NCBI GenBank assembly: GCA_002269645.1
Contig: NIVC01000041.1
Location: 310,001-374,000, forward strand
From: Macrostomum lignano
Taxonomy: Eukaryota
Length of the DNA stretch: 64,000 bases
Reading direction: 5' to 3'
Shown: in pieces, positions 2,448 through 50,019 of the stretch
How the letters are laid out: every line of letters begins with the position of its first letter
Numbering within the stretch: the stretch's first letter is position 1
Translations under genes and position numbers: made by a program
The notes under the pieces: generated by a model
What the model was told of the DNA's origin: nothing
The model's input: only the letters and a program-made list of their open reading frames with translations
The model's database searches: none

Positions 2448-5400
2448 TCACAAATCGTCCAGCGCGTTGGCAAAAGCAGCCAAATCGTGCAGCGATTCGA
2501 ATACGAAAAACTTGTCCAACAGTCTGTAGAAAGCTTCTGGCGCGCTCCGCTTGCAGCCGCATAGAAAGTGCATCTCTTCGCCAGCCAATTTGCCAGCAGA
2601 CGCGGCGGCAGCTGCCAAATTCAGGCTGCGCTCCTCTGCCCAGCGCTGTGTCTCGTCAGCCGACCAGGAGCGCAGGCCGGGCGTTCTCGAGCCGGCGCCT
2701 CCGGCTGTTGAAGACGCCGATATCGGCGGCAAAGTCGGATAAGCCGACGGAAACTGGTGCTCTCGGCCGGTGCTGCCCAGCGAAGCAGCCGACGAAGGCC
2801 GGCTGGCGCCAACTGGCCGAGCAGACGCAGCCTTCACCGGAGCAGCTGCGCCAACTGACGACGAAGCGGCGGCGGCGGCGGCGGCCTCCGCCGGCTCGTG
2901 CACAATCTTGGACGCCGCTCTGGCCTCGGACAGCACCCGTAACAGTTCGTTGATTTTAACATCGAACGAATATTTACCGGAGAAATCGTAATACAAATTG
3001 GCGCCAAGCATCAGGCCAAGCCAGCCGGTTGGCTTGTACTTCTGTTCCAGCAGTAGAGGCACTACTTTCTTGCCTAGCCGCCAGGCGTATTCGGCTTCAA
3101 CTCGACAGTTATTGGAATCTTTGTACTTGCGACTCATGCACATCAGTACGGCGTAGGAGCACTCAACAGCGTCCGCCATTGCGCTGAGAGTGGAGCCTTC
3201 GCCCATGCGCTCGTAGTCTATCCACACCTGTCAGGTGAATGGAATGTACATATAACATTGAGGGTGCTGGTGAGGGTGCTGGTGAGGGTGCTAGTGAGGG
3301 GTGCTAGTGAGGGGTGCCAATGGGGTGCTAGTGAGGGGTGCCAATGGGGTGCTAGTGGGGTGCCAATGGGGTGCTAGTGGGGTGTCAATGGGGTGCTAGT
3401 GAGGGGCTCATTGTGCTCGTTCCCATTAACCTCACAGCGCTAAAGATCGGCTCACCCGAATGCCAGCCTTAGCTAGCGCTTCCTTGATCCGAGCCACTGT
3501 GGCCTTGCACTCGTGCTGATAGCTGATCATGACGTGCTCGCCTTGCAGCACGCAGGCCGGCACAGTCTCGGGGTCAGTTGAGGTCGCCCGACGCCTCAAT
3601 TGGCGCGCCGTCTGCGGACGGTGTGAGGCGGCCGACTGGCCAGGCTTCGAGTCGCCGCTGCCTCGGGAGGCCGCAGTGGGATTCGACAGCTGCTCGTCCA
3701 GGTTGAAGTCCAGGCCCTGCCGTTTTCGGGAAAACTGCTGCTGATTATGCTGATCTAGCAGCCAATAAACACATCTAGCACCCAATAAACACATCTAGCA
3801 GCCAATAAACACATCTAGCACCCAATAAACACATCTAGCAGTCAATAAACACATCTAGCAACCAATAAACACATCTAACAATCAATAAACGCATCTAGCA
3901 CCCAATAAACACATCTAGCAGCCAATAAACACATCTAGCACCCAATAAACACATCTAGCAGCCAATAAACACATCTAGCAACCAATAAACACATCTAACA
4001 ATCAATAAACGCATCTAGCACCCAATAAACACATCTAGCAGCCAATAAACACATCTAGCAACCAATAAACACATCTAACAATCAATAAACGCATCTAAAA
4101 AACTAATAAACACATTTAAAAATAAATAAACACATCTAAAAACCGATAAACACATCTAGCAACCAATAAACACATCTAGCAGCCAATAAACACATCTAGC
4201 AATATATTGACACATCTAGCAATCAATAAACACATCCACGGGCATCAAACGTACCTGCAGCGACCGGGCCTCCCGCCACCGTCCGCGCCCATCCTGCCGC
4301 TGTGTCTGGTCGGCCATGAGGACTCTCAGACAGTCGCCAAACTCGGCCAGAATTCTCTCCCGGTTGGCCGGCAGGAAGCTCAAAGTGAACAGAATGTCTA
4401 AACCGGCTGCTACTTCGTCTTCCCGACCGCCGCTGCACATTCTAAGCAGAGCCGGGAGCAGATCCGTCTCCATTAGCAGAGTCTTATTGACATCGTTCAG
4501 TGCTAAGCGGTTGACGCACTGGGCCAGTTCTATTGTGTGATAGCCTTTGGAACGGCGGTCCGGTCGGCTGATTGAATCAGCCAGGTGGCCAACTAGGAAT
4601 TCCATCACTTCTTTGGCGCCAAGGTACAGATCGGCCTGCAATAATCATACCATTGATCTAAATCCCTGCGAATCTAAGCACTATCAACAGTTCAATGCGC
4701 TTATAAATTTTATAATAAACTTTTATACGCATAATTATACAATCCGTCACTACCTCAATCTATCCCTATCTCAATCCGCTCCTATCTACCTCAATCTACC
4801 CCTATCTCAATCCGCTCCTATCTACCTCAATCTATCCCTATCTCAATCCGCCTAATCTACCTCAATCTATCCCTATCTCAATCCGCTCCTATCTACCTCA
4901 ATCTACCCCTATCTCAATCCGCTCCTATCTACCTCAATCTATCCCTATCTCAATCCGCCTAATCTACCTCAATCTACTCCCTATCTCAATCCGCTCCTAT
5001 CTACCTCAATCTACTACTATTTCAATCCGCTCCTATCTACCTCAATCTACTCCCTATCTCAATCCGCTCCTATCTACCTCAATCTACTCCCTATCTCAAT
5101 CCGCTCCTATCTACCTCAATCTACCCCTATCTCAATCCGCCTAATCTACCTCAATCTACCCCTATCTCAATCCGCCCCTATCTACCTCAATCTACTCCCT
5201 ATCTCAATCCGCCTAATCTACCTCAATCTATCCCTATCTCAATCCGCCTAATCTACCTCAATCTACTCCCTATCTCAATCCGCCTAATCTACCTCAATCT
5301 ACTCCCTATCTCAATCCGCCTAATCTACCTCAATCTACCCCTATCTCAATCCGCCTAATCTACCTCAATCTACTCCCTATCTCAATCCGCTCCTATCTAC

Positions 5401-8400
5401 CTCAATTTACTCCCTATCTCAATCCGCCTAATCTACCTCAATCTACTCCCTATCTCAATCCGCTCCTATCTACCTCAATTTACTCCCTATCTCAATCCGC
5501 CCCTATCTACCTCAATCTATCCCTATCTCAATCCGCACCTATCTACCTCAATCTACCCCTATCTCAATATGCTCCTATCTACCTCAATCTACCCCTATCT
5601 CAATCCGCCTAATCTACCTCAATCTACTCCCTATCTCAATCCGCTCCTATCTACCTCAATGTATCCCTATCTCAATCCGCTCCTATCTACCTCAATCTAC
5701 TCCCTATCTCAATCCGCTCCTATCTACCTCAATCTACCCCTATCTCAATCTGCCTAATCTACCTCAATCTACCCCTATCTCAATCCGCCTAATCTACCTC
5801 AATCTACCCCTATCTCAATCCGCCTAATCTACCTCAATCTACTCCCTATCTCAATCCGCTCCTATCTACCTTAATCTACTCCCTATCTCAATCCGCCTAA
5901 TCTACCTCAATCTACTCCCTATCTCAATCCGCTCCTATCTACCTTAATCTACTCCCTATCTCAATCCGCCTAATCTACCTCAATCTACCCCTATCTCAAT
6001 CCAATCTCAATCTCAATCTACCTCAATCTATCCCTATCTCAATCCGCCTAATCTACCTCAATCTACTCCCTATCTCAATCCGCCTAATCTACCTCAATCT
6101 ACCCCTATCTCAATCCGCCTAATCTACCTCAATCTATCCCTATCTCAATCCGCCTAATCTACCTCAATCTACCCCTATCTCAATCCGCCCCTATCTACCT
6201 CAATCTACTCCCTATCTCAATCCGCCTAATCTACCTCAATCTATCCCTATCTCAATCTGCCTAATCTACCTCAATCTACTCCCTATCTCAATCCGCCTAA
6301 TCTACCTCAATCTACTCCCTATCTCAATCCGCCTAATCTACCTCAATCTATCCCTATCTCAATCCGCTCCTATCTACCTCAATCTACCCCTATCTCAATC
6401 CGCCCAATCTACCTCAATCTACCCCCTATCTCAATCCGCCCCAATCTACCTCAATCTACCCGTACCCCAATTCACCCCAATCTACCTCAATCTACCCCCT
6501 ATCTCGATCCGCCCCAATCTACCTCAATCTACCCCCTATCTCGATCCGCCCCAATCTACCTCAATCTACCCCCTATCTCGATCCGCCCCAATCTACCTCA
6601 ATCTACCCGTACCCCAATCCACCCCAATCTACCTCAATCTACCCCCTATCTCGATCCGCCCCAATCTACCTCAATCTACCCCCTATCTCAATCCGCCCCA
6701 ATCTACCTCAATCTACCCGTACCCCAATCCACCCCAATCTACCTCAATCTACCCCCTATCTCGATCCGCCCCAATCTACCTCAATCTACCCCCTATCTCG
6801 ATCCGCCCCAATCTACCTCAATCTACCCCCTATCTCGATCCGCCCCAATCTACCTCAATCTACCCCCTATCTCGATCCGCCCCAATCTACCTCAATCTAC
6901 CCCCTATCTCGATCCGCCCCAATCTACCTCAATCTACCCGTACCCCAATCCACCCCAATCTACCTCAATCTACCCGTACCCCAATGCACCCCAATCTACC
7001 TCAATCTACCCCCTATCTCGATCCGCCCCAATCTACCTCAATCTACCCGTACCCCAATCCGCCCCAATCTACCTCAATCTACCCCCTATCTCGATCCACC
7101 CCAATCCACCCCAATCTACCTCAATCTACCCCCTATCTCGATCCGCCCCAATCTACCTCAATCTACCCGTACCCCAATCCACCCCAATCTACCCGTACCC
7201 CAATCCACCCCAATCTACCTCAATCTACCCGTACCCCAATCCACCCCAATCTACCTCAATCTACCCGTACCCCAATCCACCCCAATCTACCTCAATCTAC
7301 CCCCTATCTCGATCCACCCCAATCTACCTCAATCTACTTCCTATCTCGATCCGCCCCAATCTACCTCAATCTACCCGTACCCCAATCCGCCCCAATCTAC
7401 CTCAATCTACCCCCTATCTCGATCCGCCCAATCTACCTCAATCTACCCCCTATCTCGATCCGCCCCAATCTACCTCAATCTACCCGTACCCCAATCCGCC
7501 CCTATCTACCTCAATTTACCCGTACCTCAATCCGCCCCTACCTCGATCCGCACCTACCTCAATCAATAGTGCCTATCCTTGATAGTGATAAATCAAGACC
7601 ATGGACAACAGACAAAGACCAGTCCACAAAGACCTCACCTGACTCTCGTCCAAAGCGAACGCAATCAGTATTAGCGCGTGAACTTGCAATTCAACGTCGG
7701 AACTTTTCAAATACGGTTTGACAGAATCGACCACGCCAACCCGGGACAGGACGTCATAAATCTCAGAGTTATTCTTAAAGAACATGTTGTAGGTCAGGCC
7801 TAGCAGGCTATTGACAGTAGCTTTAGCCAGCTCCTGGTCCTGCTTATCGTACCAACCCACCAGAGCCGGGATTACCATCTCTGTGAAGAAGAATTCAGAC
7901 TTCGATAAAGTAACACAGAATGATACGCTGCAGTCCGTGTAATTATGAAAATTCCCCAGTATCAATGTCGCATAGATTCTCTCGTGCTCAAATTTGGTCT
8001 CATCTTCGGCTGATTGGCTAACGAAAGCGTCATCGCGATGCTGCTGGAATAGGTAGACTGCGCACCTGCACAAGCTGTCAATCAGACCTTGGAATTCGGC
8101 AAGTTTTGCTCCAGCCTTCTCTCTGTAGCCAGTCAGCTGCTTCTCCGTCATCTTGAATTTGCCCATCTGGCCATAGAACTCGTACAGCCAAGACAGGTAC
8201 TCAATTAGGGGCCTAGGCTGAGCCGTGGCCTGTTCAGGCGTGTGAGAGGTCATGTACTTCTCAAAGTTAGTTAGAAAATTGCCGTAATTATTGATGACCT
8301 TGGTTAAGAATGTTTGATACTCTTCATCTGTTTGAACTCTGACTGACTCTTCTTCGGATGTCTTCTGCTTTTGTTGCTCTTGTTGCTGCTCTTGTTGCTG

Positions 8401-8544: not shown

Positions 8545-10345
8545 GCAAATAAAATTGGGGAATTTCCATCAATTCAATCAGTGTGGGGAATTCACATCAA
8601 CTCAATCAGTGTGGGGAATTTCCATCAATTCAATCAGTGTGGGGAATTCACATCAACTCAATCAGTGTGGGGAATTTCCATCAATTCAATCAGTGTGGGG
8701 AATTCACATCAACTCAATCAGTGTGGGGAATCTCCATCAATTCAATCAGTGTGGGGAATTCACATCAACTCAATCAGTGTGGGGAATCTCCATCAATTCA
8801 ATCAGTGTGGGGAATTCACATCAACTCAATCAGTGTGGGGAATCTCCATCAACTCAGTCAGTTTGGGGAATTTCCATCAACTCAATCAGTGTGGGGAATC
8901 TCCATCAACTCAGTCAGTGTGGGGAATCTCCATCAACTCAGTCAGTGTGGGGAATTCACATCAACTCAATCAGTGTGGGGAATCTCCATCAATTCAATCA
9001 GTGTGGGGAATTCACATCAACTCAATCAGTGTGGGGAATCTCCATCAACTCAGTCAGTTTGGGGAATTTCCATCAACTCAATCAGTTTGGGGAATTCCCA
9101 TGAACTCAATCAGTGTGGGGAATCTCCATCAACTCAATCAGTGTGGGGAATTCACATCAATTCAATCAGTGTGGGGAATTTCAATCAAGTCAACCAGTGT
9201 GGGGAATTTCCATCAACTCAATCAGTGTGGGGAATTCACATCAACTCAATCAGTATGGGGAATCTCCATCAACTCAATCAGTGTGGGGAATCTCCATCAA
9301 ATCAATCAGTGTGGGGAATTTCCATCAATTCAACCAGTGTGGGGAATTTCCATCAACCCAATTAGTGTGGGAATTCCCATCAACTCAATCAGTATGGAGA
9401 ATTCCCATCAACCCAATTAGTGTGGGGAATTCCTATCAGCTCAATCAGTGTGGGGAATTTCCATCAATTCAACTCAATCGGTGTGGGGAATTTCCATCAA
9501 CTCAACTCAATCAGTTTAGGGAATTTCCATCAACTCAACTCAATCAGTTTAGGGAATTTCCATCAACTCAATCAGTGTGGGGAATTTCCATCAACTCAAC
9601 TCAATCAGTGTAGGGAATTTCCATCAACTCAACTCAATCAGTTTAGGGAATTTCCATCAACTCAACTCAATCAGTTTAGGGAATTTCCATCAACTCAATC
9701 AGTGTGGGGAATTTCCATCAACTCAACTCAATCAGTTTGGGGAATTTCCATCAATTCAACTCAATCAGTGTAGGGAATTTCCATCAACTCAATCAGTGTG
9801 GGGAATTTCCATCAACTCAACTCAATCAGTTTAGGGAATTTCCATCAATTCAACTCAATCAGTGTAGGGAATCTCCATCAACTCAATCAGTGTAGGGAAT
9901 TTCCATCAACTCAATCAGTGTGGGGAATTTCCATCAACTCAACTCAATCAGTGTAGGGAATTTCCATCAACTCAACTCAATCAGTTTAGGGAATTTCCAT
10001 CAACTCAACTCAATCAGTGTAGGGAATTTCCATCAACTCAACTCAATCAGTTTAGGGAATTTCCATCAACTCAACTCAATCAGTGTAGGGAATTTCCATC
10101 AACTCAACTCAATCAGTTTAGGGAATTTCCATCAACTCAACTCAATCAGTTTAGGGAATTTCCATCAACTCAACTCAATCAGTTTAGGGAATTTCCATCA
10201 ACTCAACTCAATCAGTGTAGGGAATTTCCATCAACTCAACTCAATCAGTGTAGGGAATTTCCATCAACTCAACTCAATCAGTGTAGGGAATTTCCATCAA
10301 CTCAATCAGTGTGGGGAATTTCCATCAATTCAATCAGTGTGGGGA
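8545..10345. repeat. 28/33-bp minisatellite (TCAATCAGTGTGGGGAATTTCCATCAAC), probably in a 5-prime UTR intron of the TIR gene
   Basis: Tandem units; minus-strand acceptor TTTCCGCAG at 8534 and candidate donor GTGAGT at 10429. Confidence 0.95.
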
Positions 10346-11009
10346 ATTTCTACGATTGTCAATACCCTAAAATTCACTGCGAAATATAGAACTGAACAAA
10401 GTACATTAACATTATAACCTTGAACTCACTTTAGCTAGTACAATGCACCTTTATTTAAAGAAATAAAAACAATCAACCACAAAATGAAACAAAGTAAAAC
10501 AACAGAACCAATTTTATAAAACAGTAAACAGGCAGAGCAGAGATAGATGGATTCGCTGTTAAATATTCTACCAGATCGTTCGCAAAATGACCCACCCAAT
10601 TCATTCAAAACAAAAAAGGCAAATTGTGGCACATAAAAATCAATATATATTTGTACGAGCTACTAGGCTTCGATTCCACAAGAAATAATAAGCATTATGC
10701 GAATCTGTAACAGGGTTGTGATCGATTTAATACTAAACAGAAAGTACAGCCGCCGCCACTTTGAAACACCACCAGCCACTGCAAAGGAAAGCATAGCACT
10801 TGATAAGAGCAGATTTGAACTTATAAAAAATAATTCAAAAATCTTGTGACATTATGTAGGTCTGCGAATTGAACTGCCATTATAACCTTGAACTGCCATG
10901 CATATCGGTCTACACGCGTTAATGTTGTTTTCAGATTAACAGAATTACGTATAGATATTATTGAAATATAAATTGCCCAAATTAATGACCTGCATTAATA
11001 ATGAGATCA

Positions 11010-31944: not shown

Positions 31945-33582
31945 TGCATGAGAACAGTCTGATGACTACATGAGAACAGTCTGATAGCTACATGAGAGCA
32001 GTCCGATAGCTACATGAGAACAGTCTGATAGCTACATGAGAACAGTCTGAAAGCTACATGAGAACAGTCTGATAGCTACATGAGAACAGTCTGATAGCTA
32101 CATGAGAACAGTCTGATAGCTACATGAGAACAGTCTGATAGCTACATGAGAACAGTCTGATAGCTACATGAGAACAGTCTGATAGCTACATGAGAACAGT
32201 CTGATAGCTACATAAGAACAGTCTGATAGCTACATGAGAACAGTCTGATAGCTACATGAGAACAGTCTGATAGCTACATGAGAACAGTCTGATGACTGCA
32301 TGAGAACAGTCTGATGACTACATGAGAACAATCCGATAGCTACATGAGAACAGTCTGATAGCTACATGAGAACAGTCTGATAGCTACATGAGAACAGTCT
32401 GATAGCTACATGAGAACAGTCTGATAGCTACATGAGAACAGTCCGATAGCTACATGAGAACAGTCCGATAGCTACATGAGAACAGTCCGATAGCTACATG
32501 AGAACAGTCCGATAGCTACATGAGAACAGTCCGATAGCTACATGAGAACAGTCCGATAGCTACATGAGAACAGTCTGATGACTGCATGAGAACAGTCTGA
32601 TGACTACATGAGAACAATCCGATAGCTACATGAGAACAGTCTGATAGCTACATGAGAACAGTCTGATAGCTACATGAGAACAGTCTGATAGCTACATGAG
32701 AACAGTCTGATAGCTACATGAGAACAGTCCGATAGCTACATGAGAACAGTCCGATAGCTACATGAGAACAGTCCGATAGCTACATGAGAACAGTCCGATA
32801 GCTACATGAGAACAGTCCGATAGCTACATGAGAACAGTCCGATAGCTACATGAGAACAGTCTGATAGCTACATGAGAACAGTCTGATAGCTAGATGAGAA
32901 CAGTCTGATAGCTACATGAGAACAGTCTGATGACTGCATGAGAACAGTCTGATGACTACATGAGAACAGTCCGATAGCTACATGAGAACAGTCCGATAGC
33001 TACATGAGAACAGTCTGATTGCTACATGAGAACAGTCTGATGACTGCATGAGAACAGTCTGATGACTACATGAGAACAGTCTGATAGCTACGTGAGAACA
33101 GTCTGATAGCTGCATGAGAACAGTCTGATAGCTGCATGAGAACAGTCTGATAGCTGCATGAGAACAGTCTGATAGCTACATGAGAACAGTCTGATAGCTA
33201 CATGAGAACAGTCTGATATTGTAGCTACATGAGAACAGTCTGATAGCTACATGAGAGCAGTCTGAAAGCTACATGAGAACAGTCTGATAGCTAGATGAGA
33301 ACAGTCTGATAGCTACATGAGAACAGTCTGATAGCTACATGAGAACAGTCTGATAGCTACATGAGAACAGTCTGATAGCTACATGAGAACAGTCTGATAG
33401 CTACATGAGAACAGTCTGATTGCTACATGAGAACAGTCTGATAGCTACATGAGAACAGTCTGATAGCTACATAAGAACAGTCTGATAGCTACATGAGAAC
33501 AGTCTGATAGCTACATGAGAACAGTCTGATTGCTACATGAGAACAGTCTGATAGCTACATAAGAACAGTCTGATTGCTACAT
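31945..33582. repeat. 22-bp minisatellite GCTACATGAGAACAGTCTGATA
   Basis: Tandem units. Confidence 0.97.
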
Positions 33583-39061: not shown

Positions 39062-39868
39062 TGTCCACCCGCTCTTAGACAGGTCATGTCATGTCCACCC
39101 GCTCTTAGACAGGTCATGTCCACCCGCTCTTAGACAGCTCATGTCCACCCGCTCTTAGACAGCTCATGTCCACCCGCTCTTAGACAGGTCATGTCATGTC
39201 CACCCGCTCTTAGACAGCTCATGTCCACCCGCTCTTAGACAGGTCATGTCATGTCCACCCGCTCTTAGACAGGTCATGTCATGTCCACCCGCTCTTAGAC
39301 AGGTCATGTCCACCCGCTCTTAGACAGCTCATGTCCACCCGCTCTTAGACAGCTCATGTCCACCCGCTCTTAGACAGGTCATGTCATGTCCACCCGCTCT
39401 TAGACAGGTCATGTCCACCCGCTCTTAGACAGGTCATGTCATGTCCACCCGCTCTTAGACAGGTCATGTCATGTCCACCCGCTCTTAGACAGGTCATGTC
39501 CACCCGCTCTTAGACAGGTCATGTCCACCCGCTCTTAGACAGTTCATGTCCACCCGCTCTTAGACAGGTCATGTTGAGTCCACCCGCTCTTAGACAGGTC
39601 ATGTCCACCCGCTCTTAGACAGGTCATGTCCACCCGCTCTTAGACAGTTCATGTCCACCCGCTCTTAGACAGGTCATGTTGAGTCCACCCGCTCTTAGAC
39701 AGGTCATGTCCACCCGCTCTTAGACAGGTCATGTCCACCCGCTCTTAGACAGTTCATGTCCACCCGCTCTTAGACAGGTCATGTTGAGTCCACCCGCTCT
39801 TAGACAGGTCATGTTGAGTCCACCCGCTCTTAGATAGGTCATGTTGAGTCCACCCGCTCTTAGACAGG
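39062..39868. repeat. 25-31 bp minisatellite CATGTCCACCCGCTCTTAGACAGGT just downstream of the LRR gene stop
   Basis: Tandem units. Confidence 0.97.
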
Positions 39869-39883
39869 TCGCGCTGGCGACTG

Positions 39884-42487
39884 TCAGACGTCCGTTTCCA
39901 CGCCACCAACGGCTCCGCTTCCGCAGTCGCCACCGATGCAGGTGTACTTTGCGCACGGCGGAATAGCGATCAGACTGCCGCCACCTGTCGATGGCAGCGG
40001 AGGCAGCGGCGGCGCTGTTGTTAACCTGGGCGGCGGCAGCGGAGGCGGCGGAGGCTGCTGCAGAGACTGAAGACTGCGCCGTTGATGTTGCTGCTGCTGG
40101 CATCGCCTGCGTCTCCGCTTTCGATGCCGTCTGCTATCGCAGGAGGCCAGCGATCGCTGCCGCTGCTCCTGGTGCAGCTGCGTTGTCTCCTGCATGCTGA
40201 TTCCGCCGCCGCCGCCATCGTTGGCACCGCAAGACGCGTCGCTGCTGTCGAGGTCGTCGCTGCTGCAGCTGCCGCTGTGCGAAGTCTTCATAGCCGAGCG
40301 GCTGTTCCGAGCAAACCGATCGAAGTCCACGTAGCGCGGAATGTCGTAGGGCGACCCGGCGGAGGGCACCAGGTCCGGCGGGATGCCCACTCGGAGGGGA
40401 GGCGGCACGAAGTCTGGCCGGTGCTGCAGCAGCCGCTGCAGAGTCTGGTCCCGGCACTGCTGGCATTTGGCGCCGCCGGCCGATGAGGCGCACAGGACGC
40501 CGACTAGAGGCGACGCGGCCGAGGCGGCTGTTGAAGAAGCCGCGATGTCGGCAGCCGCCTGTGCAGCGGCCGACGATTCCAGCGCTCGGTGCCGACCGGC
40601 CACGACGGCTGCTGGTGGACGCTGGCGCCGACGCCTTCTAGCCAGGTTGGTGAGTACGACAACCAGAGTGATGAGGAACAGAACGGCCACCAGGGCTCCG
40701 GACACGATGCCAACTCCGATCACAACAGACTGGTTGACCACGTGGCGCTCGCGGTACACCACTGAGGTGGAGTTGTACCTGGCCGGGCAGTACCTGTGCC
40801 GGTACTCCAGCAGAGATCGCATCCGCTCGCCAGTCTCGCTGTCGCACTGCACGTCCCGATAGTTGGCCAGCGCGGCGCGGACCTGGCTCCACTTAGCCGG
40901 CTGAAACAGGCCGCAGGAGCACACGAAGCCCTGGCCGGTGAACAGCAGGCGTGGCCGGCTGCGCTGAGCAGTGAGGTTGAGCAGCGAGTCTGGCAGGTCC
41001 CGCATGGGATTGCCGGTGATGTTCAGCCAGCGCAGGGCGGTGAAGCGAGCCAGGGGGGAGAAATCTGTGTCAGCTGTCAAAGCGTTGTAGCTCAGATCCA
41101 GGCCTTGCACCAGCGGCGCCAAGGACGCGGCCTCGTCGCTGACTTCGCTGAGGTCGGCGATCGAGTTTCTTGTCAGCCGCAACTCGTACAGGCTGCCGTG
41201 CACGCTGACCGGCAGCAGCTGCGGCAACTTGGTGAGGCCGGCGCCTTCGCAGTCGACTGTGAGTCCGGGAGGTCGCACGGTCTCCAGACAGGAGCAGCCA
41301 ATCGGACAAGCGGCCGCGTGCCGGCAGACCAAGTCGGTCTCATTCAGGCTCAGGACGGTTCGCCAGGCGGGCTGCCCGAAGCAGGGCAGGCTGGTCCAGT
41401 AGTCCAGGGACAGCGCGTTTCTCTTGGAGAACTCCCGCGGGTCGGAGTACACCGCGCGGAGGAAGCGCCACGCGTGCTGTAGCCGGCAGTCGCAGGCCAC
41501 AGTGCTGCCAGAGTTGTCAATGTCCACAAACGACTGGAAGGCGTCGCGAAATCGCTTCAGCTGGTTGACGACTGCGTCAGCCTGTCGCTTGGCCGGGCCA
41601 ATGTCGGGCATGGGGAGGCCCCAGAGCCGGTTGGGGCCGAAGGCTTCAGGCCCGAACTGGTTGTGCAGCAGCAGCACGGACAGGCGCACATAGTAGCTCG
41701 TGTCCTCCAGCCGCCTTCTGTCGCGTTGGCGCTCAATGGCTCGGACATCGGAGGTCGTCCACACCCAGTTGAGCCGGTTGGTGACCTCGGCCAGGCGGTT
41801 GCCACTCAGGTTCACATCCTGCAGGCTGACCAGCCGCACCAGCGACAGGTCCACCCGCTTCAAGCCGCAGCTGGCGACGTTCAGCTTCTTCAAACGGAAC
41901 TGGCGCTCCGGCATGAGCCGGCTGATGAAGAGCCACTCCAGGCCAACATTTTCGGACACATCCAGCTGCTCCAGGCTGGGGAATCGTTCCAGGTAGTCGG
42001 CCAGGTCAAGCTGATTGAGCTTGTTAGCGTGCAGGCTGAGCCAACGCAGCTGACTCAGCTGGCAGGAGTCCGCAGTCCGCCGCTCGGCAGAGGTCGCGCC
42101 GTCAGCGATGCTGTTGTCAGACAGGTCCAGATCTGTCAGGCTGGGAAACAGCCGGCAGAGGTCGGTCAGCGGCAGGGCAGTCAGGCCAGCTCGGGTCAGG
42201 CTGAAGCGGCCCACCTGGGCTGGCGAAGACAGACCGGCTGGCAGGTCGCAGCTGCTGGCTGATGTCACCGATTTTGGCGGTGTCGGCGAAGGCGGCAGCC
42301 AGCAGCGATGCACTGACACAGCCGCGAAGCGGGCGTAGGAGGTGCCGACGGCAGGCGATCTAGGCTGAGCATCGGAGACAACCACATCCTGACAGTGCCG
42401 CCAGGCGCAGCTGGAGATGTCTAGACATTCAACAATTCCGCTACCGATGGCATGCAGCAGCAACTGCAGCAACAGAAACCGCCGCAT
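39884..42487 (-). CDS. Intronless single-pass LRR receptor with Toll-like ectodomain, 867 aa, no intact TIR
   Basis: Signal peptide; LRRs (LTDLDLSDNSI, LEQLDVSENV, LQDVNLSGNRL); LRRCT (VACDCRL), LRRNT (ACPIGCSC...VDC), further LRRs, second LRRCT (FVCSC); hydrophobic TM segment VVIGVGIVSGALVAVLFLITLVVVL followed by RRRRR; low-complexity cytoplasmic tail. Confidence 0.85.
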   Translation of the reverse strand: MRRFLLLQLLLHAIGSGIVECLDISSCAWRHCQDVVVSDAQPRSPAVGTSYARFAAVSVHRCWLPPSPTPPKSVTSASSCDLPAGLSSPAQVGRFSLTRAGLTALPLTDLCRLFPSLTDLDLSDNSIADGATSAERRTADSCQLSQLRWLSLHANKLNQLDLADYLERFPSLEQLDVSENVGLEWLFISRLMPERQFRLKKLNVASCGLKRVDLSLVRLVSLQDVNLSGNRLAEVTNRLNWVWTTSDVRAIERQRDRRRLEDTSYYVRLSVLLLHNQFGPEAFGPNRLWGLPMPDIGPAKRQADAVVNQLKRFRDAFQSFVDIDNSGSTVACDCRLQHAWRFLRAVYSDPREFSKRNALSLDYWTSLPCFGQPAWRTVLSLNETDLVCRHAAACPIGCSCLETVRPPGLTVDCEGAGLTKLPQLLPVSVHGSLYELRLTRNSIADLSEVSDEAASLAPLVQGLDLSYNALTADTDFSPLARFTALRWLNITGNPMRDLPDSLLNLTAQRSRPRLLFTGQGFVCSCGLFQPAKWSQVRAALANYRDVQCDSETGERMRSLLEYRHRYCPARYNSTSVVYRERHVVNQSVVIGVGIVSGALVAVLFLITLVVVLTNLARRRRRQRPPAAVVAGRHRALESSAAAQAAADIAASSTAASAASPLVGVLCASSAGGAKCQQCRDQTLQRLLQHRPDFVPPPLRVGIPPDLVPSAGSPYDIPRYVDFDRFARNSRSAMKTSHSGSCSSDDLDSSDASCGANDGGGGGISMQETTQLHQEQRQRSLASCDSRRHRKRRRRRCQQQQHQRRSLQSLQQPPPPPLPPPRLTTAPPLPPLPSTGGGSLIAIPPCAKYTCIGGDCGSGAVGGVETDV

Positions 42488-43571
42488 TTTCTGCAGCTCA
42501 GTGTGGGCAACTGCCCTCCAACTCTGCCCTCTAGAGGGAGGTCGGGATAGACTTACTAAAAAAGGGAAGGCTTGAAAAAACCGGGTCGGGAAAACAAAAG
42601 AGCCGGCCAGGGAATCGGCGCCGGAAGAGAAATTGAAAGCGGCGGTGAAAAAAAGGAGAATTACGAAGAGCTTTCTCCTCGTTCAATCCTTTGCCTTTTT
42701 AGGCAGGCGAGCTGGTCTAAAAATTTCTTTTCTACAATGCTCGGCGTGTGTTTCCTTCTTGCTTTTGCGATTTCGTATACCAGAGGCCCCCTCCCTCTCT
42801 CTCTCGCTCCAGCTCTGGTTGGCTGGTTCCCGCCGTCTCTGGGAGACGCAATAGGCTCCTGAGAAGAGACAGACAGAACAGACCTACAGCTTATCTTGCA
42901 GGCAATGCTTCATATCAATAGAGAGTACTGCGCACCTCTGGCGCCTCAGCCGCCTGAGCATACACCAGTTAGAAAAGGCTCGAATTTGGCCCAAGAGCGA
43001 GGCACATATTGTCTAAAATAGCTGGGCCATAAAATCATGGGGGGGTCGGTTCTGAGCACAGATAGGAATGTCATTGTGCTGTTCTGTGTACACTCTGAAA
43101 GATTGAATTTGCATTTGTACTAGCATAGTAGAGTCGAATTAACCGCCCCCCTGCGAGCTATTAGAGATCTGTCAATCAATTTAATTCAAACTTTGACCCT
43201 GACCACAGAATTTGTATTGCAAATTAGGACTTAATAAGAATGTTAAAGACAGCCGGTTGTCATGTCTTATTGACTATCGGGCCCGGGCAGACACCTCAGC
43301 AACAGGCCCCTCTCTATCTGCACTTTAATTCAAGCCCAACTCGGATTCGATCTGCTCGTCACTCCAAGGCCAGGATGGCTGAGCAGCAGTCTACAACTCG
43401 CACAAGTGGCATGGGAAGGCAAGGACTTTATAAAAAAATATATATAAGCTGACACAGACGAAAGTGCTGCCAACTCGGTACTCCTATCAATGCGATCTGT
43501 TAGCGTCCTGGCCGGCAAATTACCATCCAGCAGCTGTACAAAAGCATATGTAGCTCGCCAATGTTATGTGA

Positions 43572-45193
43572 GACAGAGAGAGAGAGGGGGTGAGAAAGAG
43601 AGAGGGGAGGGAGGGAGAGAGAGAGAGGGGGAGGGAGAGAGAGAGGGGAGGGAGAGAGGGGAGAGGGAGAGAGAGGGGGAGGGAGAGATGGGAGAGGGAG
43701 AGAGAGGGGGAGGAGAGATGGGAGAGGGAGAGAGAGAGGGGGAGGGAGAGAGAGGGGAGGGAGAGATGGGAGAGGGAGAGAGAGGGGGAGGAGAGAGAGG
43801 GGGAGGGAGAGATGGGAGAGGGAGAGAGAGGGGGAGGGAGAGATGGGAGAGGGAGAGAGAGGGGGAGGGAGAGATGGGAGAGGGAGAGAGATGGAGAGGG
43901 AGAGAGATGGGAGAGGGAGAGATGGGAGAGGGAGAGAGAGGGGAGGGAGAGAGAGGGGAGGGAGAGATGGGAGAGGGAGAGAGAGGGGGAGGGAGAGATG
44001 GGAGAGGGAGAGAGAGGGGAGGGAGAGATGGGAGAGGGAGAGAGATGGGAGAGGGAGAGAGATGGGAGAGGGAGAGATGGGAGAGGGAGAGAGAGGGGAG
44101 GGAGAGATGGGAGAGGGAGAGAGAGGGGAGAGGGGAGGGAGAGATGGGAGGGAGAGAGAGGGGGAGAGAGGGGAGGGAGAGATGGAGAGGGAGAGAGAGG
44201 GGGAGAGGGGAGGGAGAGATGGGAGAGGGAGAGAGAGGGGGAGAGAGGGGAGGGAGAGATGGGAGAAGGAGAGAGATGGGAGAGGGAGAGAGATGGGAGA
44301 GGGAGAGATGGGAGAGGGAGAGAGATGGGAGAGGGAGAGATGGGAGAGGGAGAGAGAGGGGGAGGGAGAGATGGAGAGGGAGAGAGAGAGGGGGAGGGAG
44401 AGAGAGGGGGAGGGAGAGATGGGAGAGGGAGAGAGAGGGGGAGGGAGAGAGAGGGGGAGGGAGAGATGGGAGAGGGAGAGAGAGGGGGAGGGAGAGATGG
44501 GAGAGGGAGAGAGAGGGGGAGGGAGAGATGGGAGAGGGAGAGAGATGGGAGAGGGAGAGAGATGGGAGAGGGAGAGATGGGAGAGGGAGAGAGAGGGGAG
44601 GGAGAGAGAGGGGAGGGAGAGATGGGAGAGGGAGAGAGAGGGGAGGGAGAGATGGGAGAGGGAGAGAGAGGGGAGGGAGAGATGGGAGAGGGAGAGAGAT
44701 GGGAGAGGGAGAGAGATGGGAGAGGGAGAGATGGGAGAGGGAGAGAGAGGGGAGGGAGAGATGGGAGAGGGAGAGAGAGGGGGAGAGGGGAGGGAGAGAT
44801 GGGAGAGGGAGAGAGAGGGGGAGAGAGGGGAGGGAGAGATGGGAGAGGGAGAGAGAGGGGGAGAGGGGAGGGAGAGATGGGAGAGGGAGAGAGAGGGGGA
44901 GAGAGGGGAGGGAGAGATGGGAGAAAGAGAGAGTTGGGAGAGGGAGAGAGATGGGAGAGGGAGAGATGGGAGAGGGAGAGAGAGGGGAGGGAGAGATGGG
45001 AGAGGGAGAGAGATGGGAGAGGGAGAGAGATGGGAGAGGGAGAGATGGGAGAGGGAGAGAGAGGGGAGGGAGAGATGGGAGAGGGAGAGAGAGGGGGAGA
45101 GGGGAGGGAGAGATGGGAGAGGGAGAGAGAGGGGGAGAGAGGGGAGGGAGAGATGGGAGAGGGAGAGAGATGGGGAGAGAGAGGGGGGGAGAG
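43572..45193. repeat. GA-rich purine tract (GGGAGAGGGAGAGAT variants)
   Basis: Direct reading; explains six long low-complexity pseudo-ORFs. Confidence 0.97.
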
Positions 45194-45519
45194 GTAAAAA
45201 ACCGAAAAAACCACACGAGTCAAACAGCAAGCCGGCACTCGGCAAATTATTGACAGCCACACCCCGAGCAGTATTTCTGAAGTGTTGGCAACCAACTTGC
45301 TCCATTAGGGATTGTAATAAAAAACTTTTGTAGTACATTCTGTTATCTATTCACCGACAAAAAACTCGACCCACATCCCCACATGGGAGGGTTCTAAAAG
45401 CATTAGCGAATGCCAGACGCACGCATCTGTTGAAATTACGAGTCGCCGCTACAAGAAGCAGTCAAAAATACAATAAACCTGATTGATACCTTCCTTCAGA
45501 AAACGCTCAAATATAGTCA

Positions 45520-47058
45520 ATTAAATTCCTCATAAAGCCTCAATTACATTTCTCATGAAGCCTCAGATGCCTTCTTCATGAAAACCTCAGTTACATTCCT
45601 CGTGAAGCCTCAATCGCATTCCTCATGAAGCCTTGAGTACATTCCTCTTGAAGCATCAATTATATTTCTCATGAAGCTTCAATTAAATTCCTCATGAAGC
45701 CTCAATTATATTTCTCATGAAGCTTCAATTAAATTCCTCATGAAGCCTCAATTATATTTCTCATGAAGCTTCAATTAAATTCCTCATGAAGCCTCAATTA
45801 TATTTCTCATGAAGCTTCAATTAAATTCCTCATGAAGCCTCAATTATATTTCTCATGAAGCTTCAATTAAATTCCTCATGAAGCCTCAATTATATTTCTC
45901 ATGAAGCTTCAATTAAATTCCTCATGAAGCCTCAATTATATTTCTCATGAAGCTTCAATTAAATTCCTCATGAAGCCTCAATTATATTTCTCATGAAGCT
46001 TCAATTAAATTCCTCATGAAGCCTCAATTATATTTCTCATGAAGCTTCAATTAAATTCCTCATGAAGCCTCAATTATATTTCTCATGAAGCTTCAATTAA
46101 ATTCCTCATGAAGCCTCAATTATATTTCTCATGAAGCTTCAATTAAATTCCTCATGAAGCCTCAATTATATTTCTCATGAAGCTTCAATTAAATTCCTCA
46201 TGAAGCCTCAATTATATTTCTCATGAAGCTTCAATTAAATTCCTCATGAAGCCTCAATTATATTTCTCATGAAGCTTCAATTAAATTCCTCATGAAGCCT
46301 CAATTACATTCCTCATGAAGCCTCAATTACATTCCTCATGAAGCCTCAGTTACATTCCTCATGAAGCCTCAATTGCATTCCTCATGAAGCCTCAGTTACA
46401 TTCCTCATGAAGCCTCAATTACATTCCTCATGAAGCCTCAGTTACATTCCTCATGAAGCCTCAATTACATTCCTCATGAAGCCTCAGTTACATTCCTTTT
46501 GAAGCCTCAATTATATTCCTCATGAAGCCTCAATTACATTTCTCATAAAGCCTCAATTACATTCCTCATGAAGCCTCAATTACATTCCTCATGAAGCCTC
46601 AATTACATTCCTCATGAAGCCTCAATTACACTCCTCATGAAGCCTCAATTACATTTTTTTGAAGCCTCAATTATATTCCTCACAAAGTCACAATTACATT
46701 CCTCATGAAGCCTCAATTACATTCCTCATGAAGCCTCAAATGCCTTCCTCATGAAGCCTCAATTACATTCCTCACAAAGTCACAATTACATTCCTCATGA
46801 ATCCTCAATTACATTCCTCACAAAGTCACAATTACATTTCTCATGAAGCCTCAATTACATTCCTCACAAAGTCACAATTACATTTCTCATGAAGCCTCAA
46901 TTACATTCCTCATAAAGCCTCAAATGCCTTCCCCATGAAGCCTCAATTACATTCCTCATAAAGCCTCAAATGCCTTCCCCATGAAGCCTCAATTACATTC
47001 CTCACAAAGTCACAATTACATTTCTCATGAAGCCTCAATTACATTCCTCATAAAGCTT
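45520..47058. repeat. 23-bp minisatellite ATTCCTCATGAAGCCTCAATTAC with a homogeneous 46-bp dimer block at about 45660-46300
   Basis: Tandem units; alternating two-variant dimer. Confidence 0.97.
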
Positions 47059-47516
47059 CACAAAATGGGAATTACATTTTGAAGGTGATCGTGCAACCCA
47101 AGCGCGATGAAAGGAATAATTCTTTAAAAAGGAACCATGGATAATTTCACGAATTCCAAAACTGAAATTCGCTTCCGCACCGAGGCTCGGGAGTCGAATA
47201 TCGAATCAGTTTAATCGCCAGCCAGAACCCCCTCGAGCAAGCTTCAGCCAGCTAATTGAGCTGATAGAGACTCAATCAATTAATTTCCGCAGACAAGGCA
47301 CCACCGGTGCTAAATTAATGTTCAATTTTGAGCAGTTGGAAGGGGTCACAACTATTATTTTTACTAGGAATATCGAAAAATCAAAAAATGCGTTTTAGAT
47401 TCCATTGCTATGTCATTTGCTATCTTTTAATTTGCTGTCTTTTAATTCTGTTATTTTAGAGATATTCATGTTACAGAATCATTCTAAAAGACGGTGTCAC
47501 ATTTATGAGTGCTCAG

Positions 47517-48950
47517 TGACACATTACACTGGTTTGTAACACATTACACTGGTTTTTAACACATTACACTAGATTGTAACACATTACACTGGTTTGTAAC
47601 ACATTACACAGGTTTGTAGCACATTACACTGGTTTGTAACACATTACACTGGTTTGTAACACATTACACTGGTTTGTAACACATTACACATGTTTGTAGC
47701 ACATTACACTGGTTTGTAACACATTACACTGGTTTGTAACACATTACACTGGTTTGTAACACATTACACTGGTTTGTAACACATTACACTGGTTTGTAAC
47801 ACATTACACTGGTTTGTAACACATTACACTGGTTTGTAACACATTACACTGGTTTGTAACGCATTACACTGGTTTGTAACACATTACACTGGTTTGTAAC
47901 GCATTACACTGGCTTGTAACACATTACACTGGTTTTTAACACATTACACTGGTTTGTAACACATTAAACTGGTTTGTAACACATTACACTGGTTTGTAAC
48001 ACATTACACTGGTTTGTAACACATTACACTGGTTTGTAACACATTACACTGGTTTGTAGCACATTACACAGGTTTGTAGCACATTACACTGGTTTGTAAC
48101 ACATTACACTGGTTTGTAACGCATTACACTGGTTTGTAGCACATTACACAGGTTTGTAGCACATTACACTGGTTTGTAACACATTACACTGGTTTGTAAC
48201 GCATTACACTGGTTTGTAACGCATTACACTGGCTTGTAACACATTACACTGGTTTGTAGCACATTACACAGGTTTGTAGCACATTACACAGGTTTGTAAC
48301 ACATTACACAGGTTTGTAGCACATTACACAGGTTTGTAGCACATTACACAGGTTTGTAACACATTACACTGGTTTGTAACGCATTACACTGGCTTGTAAC
48401 ACATTACACTGGTTTTTAACACATTACACTGGTTTGTAACACATTAAACTGGTTTGTAACACATTACACTGGTTTGTAACACATTACACTGGTTGGTAAC
48501 ACATTACACTGGTTTGTAACACATTACACTGGTTGGTAACACATTAAACTGGTTTGTAACACATTACACTGGTTGGTAACACATTACACTGGTTGGTAAC
48601 ACATTACACTGGTTTGTAACACATTACACTGGTTTGTAACACATTACACTGGTTGGTAACACATTACACTGGTTTTTAACACATTACACTGGTTGGTAAC
48701 ACATTACACTGGTTGTTAACACATTACACTGGTTTGTAACACATTAAACTGGTTTGTAACACATTACACTGGTTTGTAACACATTACACTGGTTGGTAAC
48801 ACATTACACTGGTTTGTAACACATTACACTGGTTTTGTAACACATTACACTGGTTTTGTAACACATTACACTGGTTTGTAACACATTACACTGGTATATA
48901 ACACATTACACTGGTTCGTAGCACATTACACTGGACTGTGACACATTACA
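47517..48950. repeat. 20-bp minisatellite ACACATTACACTGGTTTGTA
   Basis: Tandem units. Confidence 0.97.
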
Positions 48951-50019
48951 CTTCTCTAGGACGGATCTGTTACCAATGTTTGGCACACAGCCTGATCTGT
49001 CTGTGACAACTAAAACAGTGCACTGGTATTTATTGATGTATACCATCGAGAATGGCGTAACACAGGAAAGCACTTGCTTTGTGGACAATTCCCAGTCTGA
49101 AATGACACAATTCTCTGCGACACAAACCAACCCCCCAATTCCCATTCTCGCCGCAGTTCTCCCAATTTTATTCGGGGGGGGGGACAAAATCTGAACAAAC
49201 GATCGATTACGTCGCTAAGGATGGCAACGAATCCCAATTTTGGGATTTCGCTGGCCAGACCTTTATCCGGCGGCACCATCACTTTGACATGAATGAAAGG
49301 ATTCTGGAGTCCAGTCTGCGGAGAGCAGAAAGAGAAGGGTAAAAAAATTAATTTCCAAGGAAACCCAAAACCACTTAACGTTTTTTCTCCCTCCGGTCCC
49401 CCCCCCGCGCACTCGCTCCGTATAAGTGTTTGCGACAGGTGGGGACCTCAAAAGCTCCGCTGGGTCACTCCGGCAACACGACGGGAGAAAAAGTAAAATA
49501 CTCGTATAAGAAAACTTATATTAAAAAGGCTGGATGGGAGAAGTTTTGGCCAGTCGATCAATGCATCAGCGCCCCGCTGCCCGCCTTCCCGGCACACTCC
49601 CGCCTTCTCTCTCTCTCCTTCTCTCTCTCTTAAGTCTTGCTGGAGAGAAACTGCCAGATCTGGATGGACGCCGCCGAGAGAAGGCATGGAGTTAAATAGG
49701 CAATTCGACTCTCTGGGTAGCAACAGGGTAAAAACGTTAGGAAATTCTCGTTCAGACACCGCGAGTGCCAGTCACTTTCTCAATTGTCACTCGGGTCTAA
49801 GTTTGAGATATTTTTTTGAGTTTCCATGATGATTGAAGCTTGCTCTGGTCTGGGGAGCCGCTGAGTTAAACTTTTTTCCCAGATAATTATGCAAATTAAT
49901 ATCTTGTGTCTCTGCCTGCCGGTCTGTCTGTTTCACTAAGGGTCTGTCTGTCTCTTTGGTGTCTTTCTACCTAATAAGTGTCTCTAGGCCTTAGTTTTTT
50001 CCTGTCTGTGCGTCCGTTC

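Follow-up and report, generated by a model that had tools for sequence, protein, structure and literature searches.

Toll-like receptors (TLRs) are characterised by at least one leucine-rich repeat (LRR), a transmembrane helix and a TIR domain (PMC8609888). Surveys have found zero TLRs in Macrostomum lignano and in all other sampled flatworms, and 'TLR-like' flatworm proteins are mentioned in them merely as data not shown (PMC8609888, PMC10279657, PMC7958881). A flatworm gene encoding a Toll-type ectodomain matters because flatworms are reported to be without Toll receptors, as the original prediction for this locus had also stated, in agreement with these surveys (PMC8609888, PMC10279657). 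Several described systems offer points of comparison. The P-type Tolls, such as Drosophila Toll (4lxr), Aedes Toll5A (7b1b) and C. elegans TOL-1 (8suf), carry multiple cysteine clusters, with more than one LRRCT and an LRRNT between LRR blocks. In Hydra, the HyLRR/HyTRR system (defined in PMC8609888) combines an LRR ectodomain and transmembrane segment without a TIR, in an animal without canonical TLRs, with membrane-anchored TIR-only partners. The vertebrate TLR paralogue RP105/CD180 likewise has a TLR-type ectodomain without a TIR, but a single cysteine cluster, and acts with MD-1 and TLR4. A horseshoe-crab cluster (P0035) is a further example of Toll-like proteins that lack a TIR. In Slit and Slitrk proteins an LRRCT is directly followed by an LRRNT; Slit is secreted, with four capped LRR domains, EGF and laminin-G domains, while Slitrk has two capped domains of six LRRs each. 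The NGL/LRRC4 proteins and 5T4/TPBG are membrane-bound LRR proteins that function in adhesion and end in a PDZ-binding tail. More broadly, LRR adhesion proteins with such tails form an established class, for example SALM/Lrfn1-3 (PMC5895706).

The gene described here lies in a 64,000-nucleotide stretch of M. lignano contig NIVC01000041.1 (the window), on which an identical gene call is present. It is a single-exon open reading frame on the minus strand, running from ATG to TGA at exactly the predicted position (39884..42487) and encoding 867 amino acids plus a stop codon (39884-39886). Two other genomic copies have the same length and structure, and the paralogues are also single-exon; the three locus tags of the family have no mention in the literature. 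The gene is solitary within a repeat-rich region, and a 25-bp array begins 14 nt past its stop codon.

Coding sequences of the copies are ~98.5% identical, versus ~93% in the flanks, and dN/dS against the two other copies was 0.19 overall, 0.23 for the ectodomain and 0.09 for the tail, the last value being based on just 2 non-synonymous and 8 synonymous changes. Judged from these substitution patterns, the gene is functional and under purifying selection, because dN/dS against both copies is as low as 0.19. The isolation of the gene among repeats might suggest a pseudogene in decay or a spurious annotation, yet this is scarcely credible for an uninterrupted 2.6-kb reading frame maintained in three copies at that ratio, with an architecture and tail motifs that are common to the paralogues and to a distant homologue.

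To assess the extent of the family, 1.84 billion representatives were searched exhaustively with HMMER; only five matches fell below 1e-30: three M. lignano paralogue groups, one protein from Logan run DRR639838 and one 2779-aa protein. The last is a generic multi-LRR protein that reaches this threshold through summed LRR stretches. The family thus consists of the three M. lignano paralogue groups and the DRR639838 protein, its sole non-Macrostomum member, and the paralogues and this distant homologue have the same architecture and the same tail motifs. Word-indexed homologue searches were of limited help for this LRR protein, as a single sequence recovered only an M. lignano paralogue and a 4-sequence profile missed known members.

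The encoded protein begins with a signal-peptide-like N-terminus (residues 1-20, MRRFLLLQLLLHAIGSGIVE; 42428..42487, minus strand, as for all features of the gene), with a hydropathy peak at residues 4-22 and presumed cleavage. It is followed by a Cys-rich N-terminal cap defined from the family alignment (residues 21-91; 42215..42427), in which each of the four family members retains C27, C32, C62 and C80. LRR block 1 (residues 92-331; 41495..42214), delimited by Pfam, motif scan and the AlphaFold model, comprises five canonical LxxLxLxxN repeats starting at residues 117, 147, 172, 199 and 222, and then irregular helix-containing repeats at ~268 and ~317. Its repeats align collinearly with those upstream of the first LRRCT in TIR-bearing Tolls. 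The helical insert within the block (residues 236-331), searched alone, gave zero matches outside the family and distinguishes the flatworm protein from P-type Tolls. LRRCT1 (residues 332-388; 41324..41494; C332-x-C334...C369...C388) is separated by only five residues from LRRNT2 (residues 394-426; 41210..41308; C394-P-x2-C398-x-C400...C413), for which the Pfam LRRNT match is weak (E 0.021, versus 5.6e-4 in paralogue P0002). LRR block 2 contains three LRRs at 433, 460 and 485 (residues 433-510; 40958..41191; Pfam LRR_8 at 432-494 and motif scan) and leads to a juxtamembrane LRRCT2 (residues 523-567; 40787..40921; C523-x-C525...C548...C567), conserved with Tolls. When 21 sequences including Toll receptors are aligned, 11 of the 12 cap cysteines are invariant, including those of LRRNT2, and the twelfth is nearly so.

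A single transmembrane helix follows (residues 588-616; 40640..40726), recognised by hydropathy (Kyte-Doolittle up to 3.0) and modelled as helical, with the poly-Arg stop-transfer sequence RRRRRQR directly after it; all six NxS/T sequons lie N-terminal of the helix. The LRRs of the extracellular part are recognised by Pfam LRR_4 (E 6.7e-11) and LRR_8 (E 1.2e-9), both above curated cut-offs. The predicted order of LRRs, LRRCT, LRRNT, LRRs, LRRCT and transmembrane segment is therefore borne out by Pfam, motifs, cysteines and hydropathy and goes beyond a chance resemblance, and the ectodomain has the multiple-cysteine-cluster layout. No Ig, FN3, EGF, laminin-G or Slitrk-like domains were found by Pfam in the protein or its paralogues. 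The AlphaFold model, built on an alignment that included Toll sequences, is a confident one (pLDDT 83, pTM 0.78), whereas a 2-row alignment gave an unusable model (pLDDT 48).

Comparison with known receptors places this ectodomain closest to Tolls. When the 4-sequence ectodomain profile was searched, nine alignments extended over more than 400 of its 553 positions (75-98 bits), eight of them to TIR-bearing proteins and one to a Strigamia LRR protein. Pfam confirmed the TIR domain in six of the seven tested among the long-alignment TIR-bearing proteins, and also in a psyllid 'Protein toll'; the named neighbours include this protein, Limulus and oyster 'protein toll-like' and a limpet TIR protein. 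By single-domain score, 30-32 of the top 40 matches are TIR-bearing proteins, although such counts are inflated because Toll entries are very numerous in the database. Against the PDB, the family profile ranked Drosophila Toll (E 1.5e-24) and Aedes Toll5A (E 3.7e-21) first, and among the three PDB alignments listed theirs alone cross the LRRCT-LRRNT junction, with one stretch from LRRCT1 through LRRNT2 and the LRRs to LRRCT2 running onto Drosophila Toll residues 526-754, so that LRRCT1 aligns from residue 526. In a Foldseek search of the PDB, ranks 1-3 were taken by Toll (4lxr, 4lxs) and Toll5A, with C. elegans TOL-1 at rank 7; TM-scores were low (~0.3) and the result is not independent of the sequence comparison, because the AlphaFold alignment included Toll sequences.

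These comparisons also bear on whether the protein might instead be an LRR adhesion or guidance protein unrelated to Toll, whose layout arose independently or came from a Slit/Slitrk-like tandem-capped ancestor and whose similarity to Toll reflects generic caps and repeats. The capped unit in isolation fits such an origin: across the 150 columns of the LRRNT2-LRR-LRRCT2 unit, BLOSUM distances reach saturation at ~0.7, with a Slit3 domain as near as the Tolls, and this saturation precludes a robust phylogeny, so that no tree is reported. In the PDB profile search, the generic LRRNT-capped proteins 5T4/TPBG, LGR4/5, VLR and Slit2 scored 45-58 bits on this unit, close to the 53 bits of the junction-spanning Toll stretch. 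The Toll signal consequently depends above all on the extended collinearity and on the presence of two caps. Slit3 matches the family profile significantly (E 2.7e-11) and its alignment extends over one LRRCT-LRRNT junction (37 bits). With the single sequence, the best PDB match, on LRR block 1, was LRRC4B/NGL-3, a synaptic LRR protein with a PDZ tail. In contrast, all but one of the high-scoring long collinear alignments are to TIR-bearing Tolls, while Slit3 reaches about half the bits (41-45 versus 68-98 for TIR-bearing proteins) at rank 73-79 of 135. The caution in the original prediction about similar ectodomains in non-TLR LRR proteins thus still holds in part, as by distance the capped unit alone does not separate Toll from Slit.

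Domain content and layout also weigh against an origin outside the Tolls. The flatworm protein has a transmembrane helix and none of the additional domains of Slit, its blocks of ~8 and 3 LRRs differ from those of Slitrk, and no Slitrk-like proteins were recognised among the named top-150 matches, so that it belongs to neither group. It resembles the SALM/NGL class in being a type I LRR protein with a class I PDZ-ligand-like C-terminus; however, members of that class possess just one capped LRR domain, in most cases followed by Ig or FN3, whereas the flatworm protein has two Cys-capped blocks and lacks both domains. As in Tolls, its second capped block immediately adjoins the membrane, and three Toll structures lead the fold search. 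An origin unrelated to Toll is consequently rather unlikely, though the tail's resemblance to adhesion-protein tails speaks for it, and were it correct the finding would be an ordinary one. On the sequence evidence, the nearest relatives beyond the family itself are the TIR-bearing multiple-cysteine-cluster Tolls, which is consistent with the predicted protostome-type Toll layout, given the double caps, the collinear alignments and the search ranks. Relative to P-type Tolls, the module order to the membrane is the same and ~440 residues are collinear, but the ectodomain is much shorter (~8+3 LRRs), with a strongly reduced first LRR block, the TIR is missing and the tail bears motifs of a different kind.

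The cytoplasmic tail (residues 617-867, ~250 aa; 39887..40639) is disordered and of low complexity and contains no TIR. At E<=1, Pfam detected neither TIR nor TIR_2 in the whole protein or in the tail alone, nor any TIR in the other family members, paralogues included. A TIR HMM built from Toll receptors found nothing on the tail of the 867-aa protein even at E<=100, and on the paralogue tails gave only negative-score matches, to two of them. The original description of the gene as lacking an intact TIR was correct but understated, since neither Pfam nor the TIR HMM detects any remnant. A hidden downstream TIR exon was considered and rejected: the coding sequence is closely followed by the 25-bp array, the same strand shows no TIR-like frame nearby, and such an exon is also contradicted by the C-terminus common to all relatives. 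Without a TIR, the protein does not qualify as a TLR; with a TLR-like LRR ectodomain and no TIR it falls within the 'LRR-only TLR-like' category (PMC8609888).

In place of a TIR, the tail carries short motifs of its own. PLPPPR (residues 816-821; 40025..40042), within PPPPPLPPPR, fits the PxxPxR consensus of class II SH3 ligands, and one PxxPxR occurs at the equivalent position in all four family members. The C-terminal E-T-D-V (39887..39898) resembles a class I PDZ ligand; across the family the termini are ETDV, GTNV, TTDV and QTDL, or T-[D/N]-[V/L], although the ~30 residues before them cannot be aligned, and all four members show the C-terminal [S/T]-x-hydrophobic sequence of PDZ-tailed LRR proteins. 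An acidic Ser cluster is the third conserved motif, and the motifs persist down to 27% overall identity. Together with purifying selection, these three motifs point to TIR-independent coupling, in which the tail may bind PDZ and SH3 domains, as suggested by the short linear motifs.

A TIR-less ectodomain could alternatively act as in Hydra, as an LRR-only microbe sensor paired with a separate TIR protein, and the original prediction had proposed signalling of this kind and drawn attention to a nearby TIR gene. The window does contain an intact TIR_2-domain gene whose link to the receptor is not established (2448..3539, minus strand; last exon 2448-3227, GT-AG intron 3228-3455, TIR start ~3539), and its spliced TIR domain matches PF13676 positions 1-122 (E 1e-22). 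It lies 36.3 kb downstream of the receptor gene on the same strand, rather than 31 kb away as first stated; a candidate TIR gene at ~8.9 kb, which would correspond to 31 kb, was rejected, as a 28-bp tandem array is found there. The presence of such a gene in the same window would be improbable by chance if TIR genes are rare in the genome, the ectodomain is Toll-like, and flatworms retain TIR-domain proteins and downstream pathway parts despite the absence of TLRs (PMC7958881). However, the neighbour is of the TIR_2 type, scoring 19.5 bits against PF01582, the TLR-type TIR model, under the 21.3 cut-off, and E 0.014 with the Toll-TIR HMM. No membrane anchor was found for it, the candidate upstream exon resembling a soluble helical repeat, and the interval to the receptor gene is largely minisatellite arrays. 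In Pfam scans of 20 long frames from the 2-35 kb region, nearly all proved to be translated minisatellites.

Related loci give a similar picture, with no TIR within 10 kb of two paralogous loci or of the two other copies. A word-indexed search with the TIR exon had no matches, which is probably an effect of poly-Ala words crowding the list of candidates. In contrast to Hydra, no membrane-anchored TIR partner was identified in the window or in the 10-kb flanks of related loci, and the long conserved tail of the flatworm protein suggests partners of its own, with motifs pointing towards PDZ and SH3 domains. Both the relevance of the neighbouring gene and Hydra-like signalling through separate TIR proteins are thus left without support, and a split receptor appears improbable.

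A further TIR-less precedent is RP105, which is present among the weaker sequence and fold matches and might suggest a decoy or regulatory TLR paralogue that modulates canonical TLRs. The tail of RP105 is very short, whereas that of the flatworm protein is long and conserved. Such a protein would moreover have nothing to regulate, since surveys of M. lignano report no canonical TLR (PMC8609888), and this role is very doubtful.

Taken with the Toll-like ectodomain, the reading we favour, with moderate confidence, is that 39884..42487 encodes a type I membrane protein with a shortened Toll-type ectodomain, whose TIR part has been lost or replaced and whose tail is probably coupled to scaffolds. 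The gene most probably descends, we infer, from a Toll/TLR ancestor in which the portion encoding the TIR disappeared or gave way to another sequence, and its product is probably a TIR-less Toll-like receptor. Most likely, the ectodomain would bind an extracellular or cell-surface ligand, and the tail would anchor and cluster the protein on PDZ- and SH3-domain scaffolds at cell contacts. A scaffold-anchored tail combined with a ligand-binding ectodomain would imply a role in adhesion or recognition, similar to that of PDZ-tailed LRR membrane proteins, and not TIR-MyD88 signalling. An example of a TIR-independent role of Toll ectodomains is adhesion GPCR pairing in the TOL-1/LAT-1 complex (PDB 8suf). 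More tentatively, Macrostomum may have kept the multiple-cysteine-cluster Toll as an ectodomain-only lineage, in which TIR signalling was swapped for a PDZ/SH3 tail and an old TIR-independent role in cell recognition or morphogenesis was retained while the immune branch was lost; if so, this would represent a natural separation of Toll's two functions.

M. lignano is amenable to RNAi and transgenesis, and descent of this gene from a Toll would provide a tractable case for studying Toll ectodomain function without a TIR. Macrostomum is an early-branching flatworm. Such descent would also mean that Toll genes were not merely discarded in flatworms, and that the 'TLR loss' reported for this group was at least partly a loss of domains and not of genes.

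The LRR gene at 39884-42487 (-) is exactly one uninterrupted ORF of 867 codons, and an identical 867-aa gene is called on contig NIVC01000041.1. A 98%-identical gene, BOX15_Mlig007983g1, lies on two more contigs and is annotated only as hypothetical or 'LRRCT domain-containing'. The presence of three assembled copies (window, L003 on NIVC01001183.1 and L004 on NIVC01001758.1) is consistent with the genome duplication known in M. lignano; two have identical coding sequences, from both of which the window copy differs at dS 0.039 and dN 0.007 (dN/dS 0.19, Nei-Gojobori counts). By part, dN/dS is 0.23 in the ectodomain and 0.09 in the tail, the latter from just two non-synonymous and eight synonymous changes, and identity to the two other copies is about 98.5% in the CDS versus about 93% in the flanks. 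The gene is thus real and under constraint. Its GC content is high: the 2-kb bin 40001-42000 inside it reaches 66%, against roughly 30-55% for most bins of that size elsewhere in the window. No other called genes lie within 10 kb. About 1.1 kb upstream of the start codon is a 1.6-kb GA/GGGAGG-rich tract (43570-45193), repeats also occur downstream of the other genomic copies, and an LTR-retrotransposon pol gene is found about 10 kb away at both L003 and L004.

With feature boundaries taken from the sequence and from alignments with relatives, the protein comprises a signal-like hydrophobic N-terminus (residues 1-20), an N-terminal cap with four family-conserved cysteines (C27, C32, C62, C80), a first LRR block (about residues 92-331; five canonical LxxLxLxxN repeats, then irregular repeats with two long helices), LRRCT1 (C332-x-C334...C369...C388), LRRNT2 five residues further on (C394-P-x-x-C398-x-C400...C413), three LRRs (433-510), LRRCT2 (C523-x-C525...C548...C567), one transmembrane helix (588-616) followed by RRRRRQR and a low-complexity cytoplasmic tail of 250 residues. 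All six N-glycosylation sequons are N-terminal of the helix. Pfam reports LRR_4 and LRR_8 above curated cut-offs, a weak LRRNT (E 0.021) and no further domain, and the AlphaFold ectodomain model is confident with a 21-row alignment (pLDDT 83, pTM 0.78). The module order of the original prediction is thereby confirmed. Between the regular LRRs and LRRCT1, residues 236-331 (about 41495-41782) make up an insert that is strongly conserved and in part helical, and which as sole query gave no matches outside the family; some Toll matches also have irregular repeats at this position.

The absence of an intact TIR was likewise borne out. Pfam detected no TIR or TIR_2 at E<=1 in the whole protein or the tail alone, a TIR HMM built from Toll matches, relaxed to E<=100, still had no match to the tail encoded in the window and matched two paralogue tails only with negative scores, and no TIR was found in the three relatives. 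A TIR exon hidden downstream is unlikely: a 25-bp tandem array of 30 copies (39062-39870) begins 14 nt past the stop codon, no TIR-like frame lies nearby on the gene's strand, and all relatives finish with the same short C-terminal motif.

When 1.84 billion cluster representatives were searched exhaustively with the ectodomain profile (HMMER), only five matches fell below 1e-30. Four are the gene's own cluster, the M. lignano paralogue groups P0002 (BOX15_Mlig000711g1, 44% identity) and P0005 (BOX15_Mlig003707 group), and P0006 (27% identity), from the Logan assembly of run DRR639838. The fifth, P0007 (amphioxus, 2779 aa), was rejected as a family member, being a generic multi-LRR protein whose score sums many LRR stretches. 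The M. lignano paralogues are also single-exon. The P0006 gene, the only family member found outside M. lignano, occupies 572-2911 of a 4862-bp contig (L001); its product shares the family's cysteine framework, contains PPPPPR and ends in QTDL. Every cap cysteine is kept in all four members. Three features are shared by their otherwise unalignable tails: an acidic serine cluster, one PxxPxR site each (PPLPPR, PLPPPR or PPPPPR), located 30-50 residues before the C-terminus, and a terminal T-[D/N]-[V/L] (ETDV, GTNV, TTDV, QTDL).

Outside the family, collinearity was assessed with a four-sequence ectodomain profile of 553 positions. Nine proteins aligned in one stretch of >400 positions, from LRR block 1 to LRRCT2 (75-98 bits), and eight of them carry a TIR-like C-terminal domain, the ninth (Strigamia P0125) being without TIR. 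Pfam confirmed PF01582 in six of the seven TIR-like collinear matches tested, and also in the psyllid 'Protein toll' P0011; the TIR of P0045 was detected solely by a purpose-built HMM. Neighbours outside the family go by source names such as 'Protein toll' (Cacopsylla), 'protein toll-like' (Limulus, Saccostrea) and, in Patella, TIR-domain protein, the Owenia matches being unnamed. When matches are ordered by the score of their best single domain, 30-32 of the first 40 bear a TIR, a count biased because Toll families are hugely expanded in databases, and Slit3 (P0092) ranks 73-79 of 135 (41-45 bits versus 68-98 bits). In the PDB sequence search the best matches are Drosophila Toll (E 1.5e-24) and Aedes Toll5A (E 3.7e-21), the only ones among the three alignments listed to span LRRCT1-LRRNT2-LRRs-LRRCT2 (e.g. 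Toll residues 526-754). Foldseek against PDB also places Toll (4lxr, 4lxs) and Toll5A on top (E 1e-12 to 2e-9), with generic LRR proteins next at about 3e-8 and C. elegans TOL-1 seventh, a ranking that is not independent because the AlphaFold alignment held Toll sequences and TM-scores were low (about 0.3). The capped LRRNT2-LRR-LRRCT2 unit by itself is generic: BLOSUM distances are saturated (~0.7 over 150 columns), a Slit3 domain lies no farther away than the Tolls do, and several LRRNT-capped PDB proteins reach 45-58 bits on it, the junction-spanning stretch of Toll scoring 53 bits. Slit3, too, spans one LRRCT-LRRNT junction (37 bits). Given these limits, it is well supported by collinearity, ranking and PDB searches that the ectodomain is closest to multiple-cysteine-cluster (mcc) Tolls, and descent from a TLR is the most probable inference but unproven. 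Proteins that lack TIR and have a juxtamembrane module of Toll type are also found in chelicerates (P0035/P0175; Tachypleus, Limulus 'protein toll-like'), the centipede Strigamia (P0125) and Logan samples (P0089 cluster), so TIR loss from Toll-like ectodomain genes may be recurrent, and some cases could be truncated gene models.

The original prediction further suggested that the protein may signal through separate TIR proteins, as in the split receptor of Hydra, and placed a cytosolic TIR gene about 31 kb away. The window does contain an intact TIR gene, encoded like the LRR gene on the minus strand and 36.3 kb from it rather than 31 kb; its last exon (2448-3227) is preceded by a GT-AG intron (3228-3455) and an exon ending at 3456, the TIR starts at about 3539, and a possible upstream helical-repeat exon (4216-4641) may extend the gene to 4641. 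After splicing, the domain matches the full length of Pfam TIR_2 (E 1e-22). It stays under the cut-off for the Pfam TLR-type TIR model, scores only E 0.014 against the Toll-TIR HMM and has as nearest solved structure only a bacterial CRISPR-associated TIR (Cat1, E 0.003). No membrane anchor was seen in this gene. The TIR is followed by an Ala/Ser-rich linker and then a helical C-terminal region that looks conserved and has no Pfam match. No functional link between the two genes was found, and the 10-kb flanks of the paralogous and homeologous loci contain no TIR. A Hydra-like partnership with separate TIR proteins may exist, although nothing specific supports it. Between the genes lie mostly minisatellite arrays, which make up about 25 of 64 kb of the window (39%; period 16-46 bp, summed at TRF score >=400). 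Each array has a different unit (for example, 4750-7564, 8556-10350, 31947-33582, 45517-47060 and 47519-48952), and most long ORFs besides these two genes are translated arrays.

Under the published definition of a TLR as LRR, TM and TIR (PMC8609888), the M. lignano protein is not a TLR; it fits the 'LRR-only TLR-like' class, which the same authors state for flatworms without description. In published surveys the TLR count is zero for M. lignano and for flatworms generally (PMC8609888, PMC10279657, PMC7958881). No literature naming the loci of this family was found, and no earlier description appears to exist of an mcc Toll-type ectodomain combined with a tail bearing conserved PxxPxR and PDZ-ligand-like motifs. 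From the sequences searched, the family appears confined to Macrostomum and one Logan DRR639838 sequence.

The gene is under selection and encodes a type I membrane protein whose ectodomain is double-capped and Toll-type and whose tail lacks TIR and carries conserved short motifs. Established consensus rules predict that this tail bears two ligands, one for class I PDZ domains (the C-terminal T-x-[V/L]) and one of class II for SH3 domains (PxxPxR). From these predicted ligands it would follow that the protein is clustered on scaffold proteins at cell contacts, where it may act as an adhesion or recognition receptor, by analogy with the PDZ-tailed LRR proteins SALM/Lrfn, which have such roles (PMC5895706).
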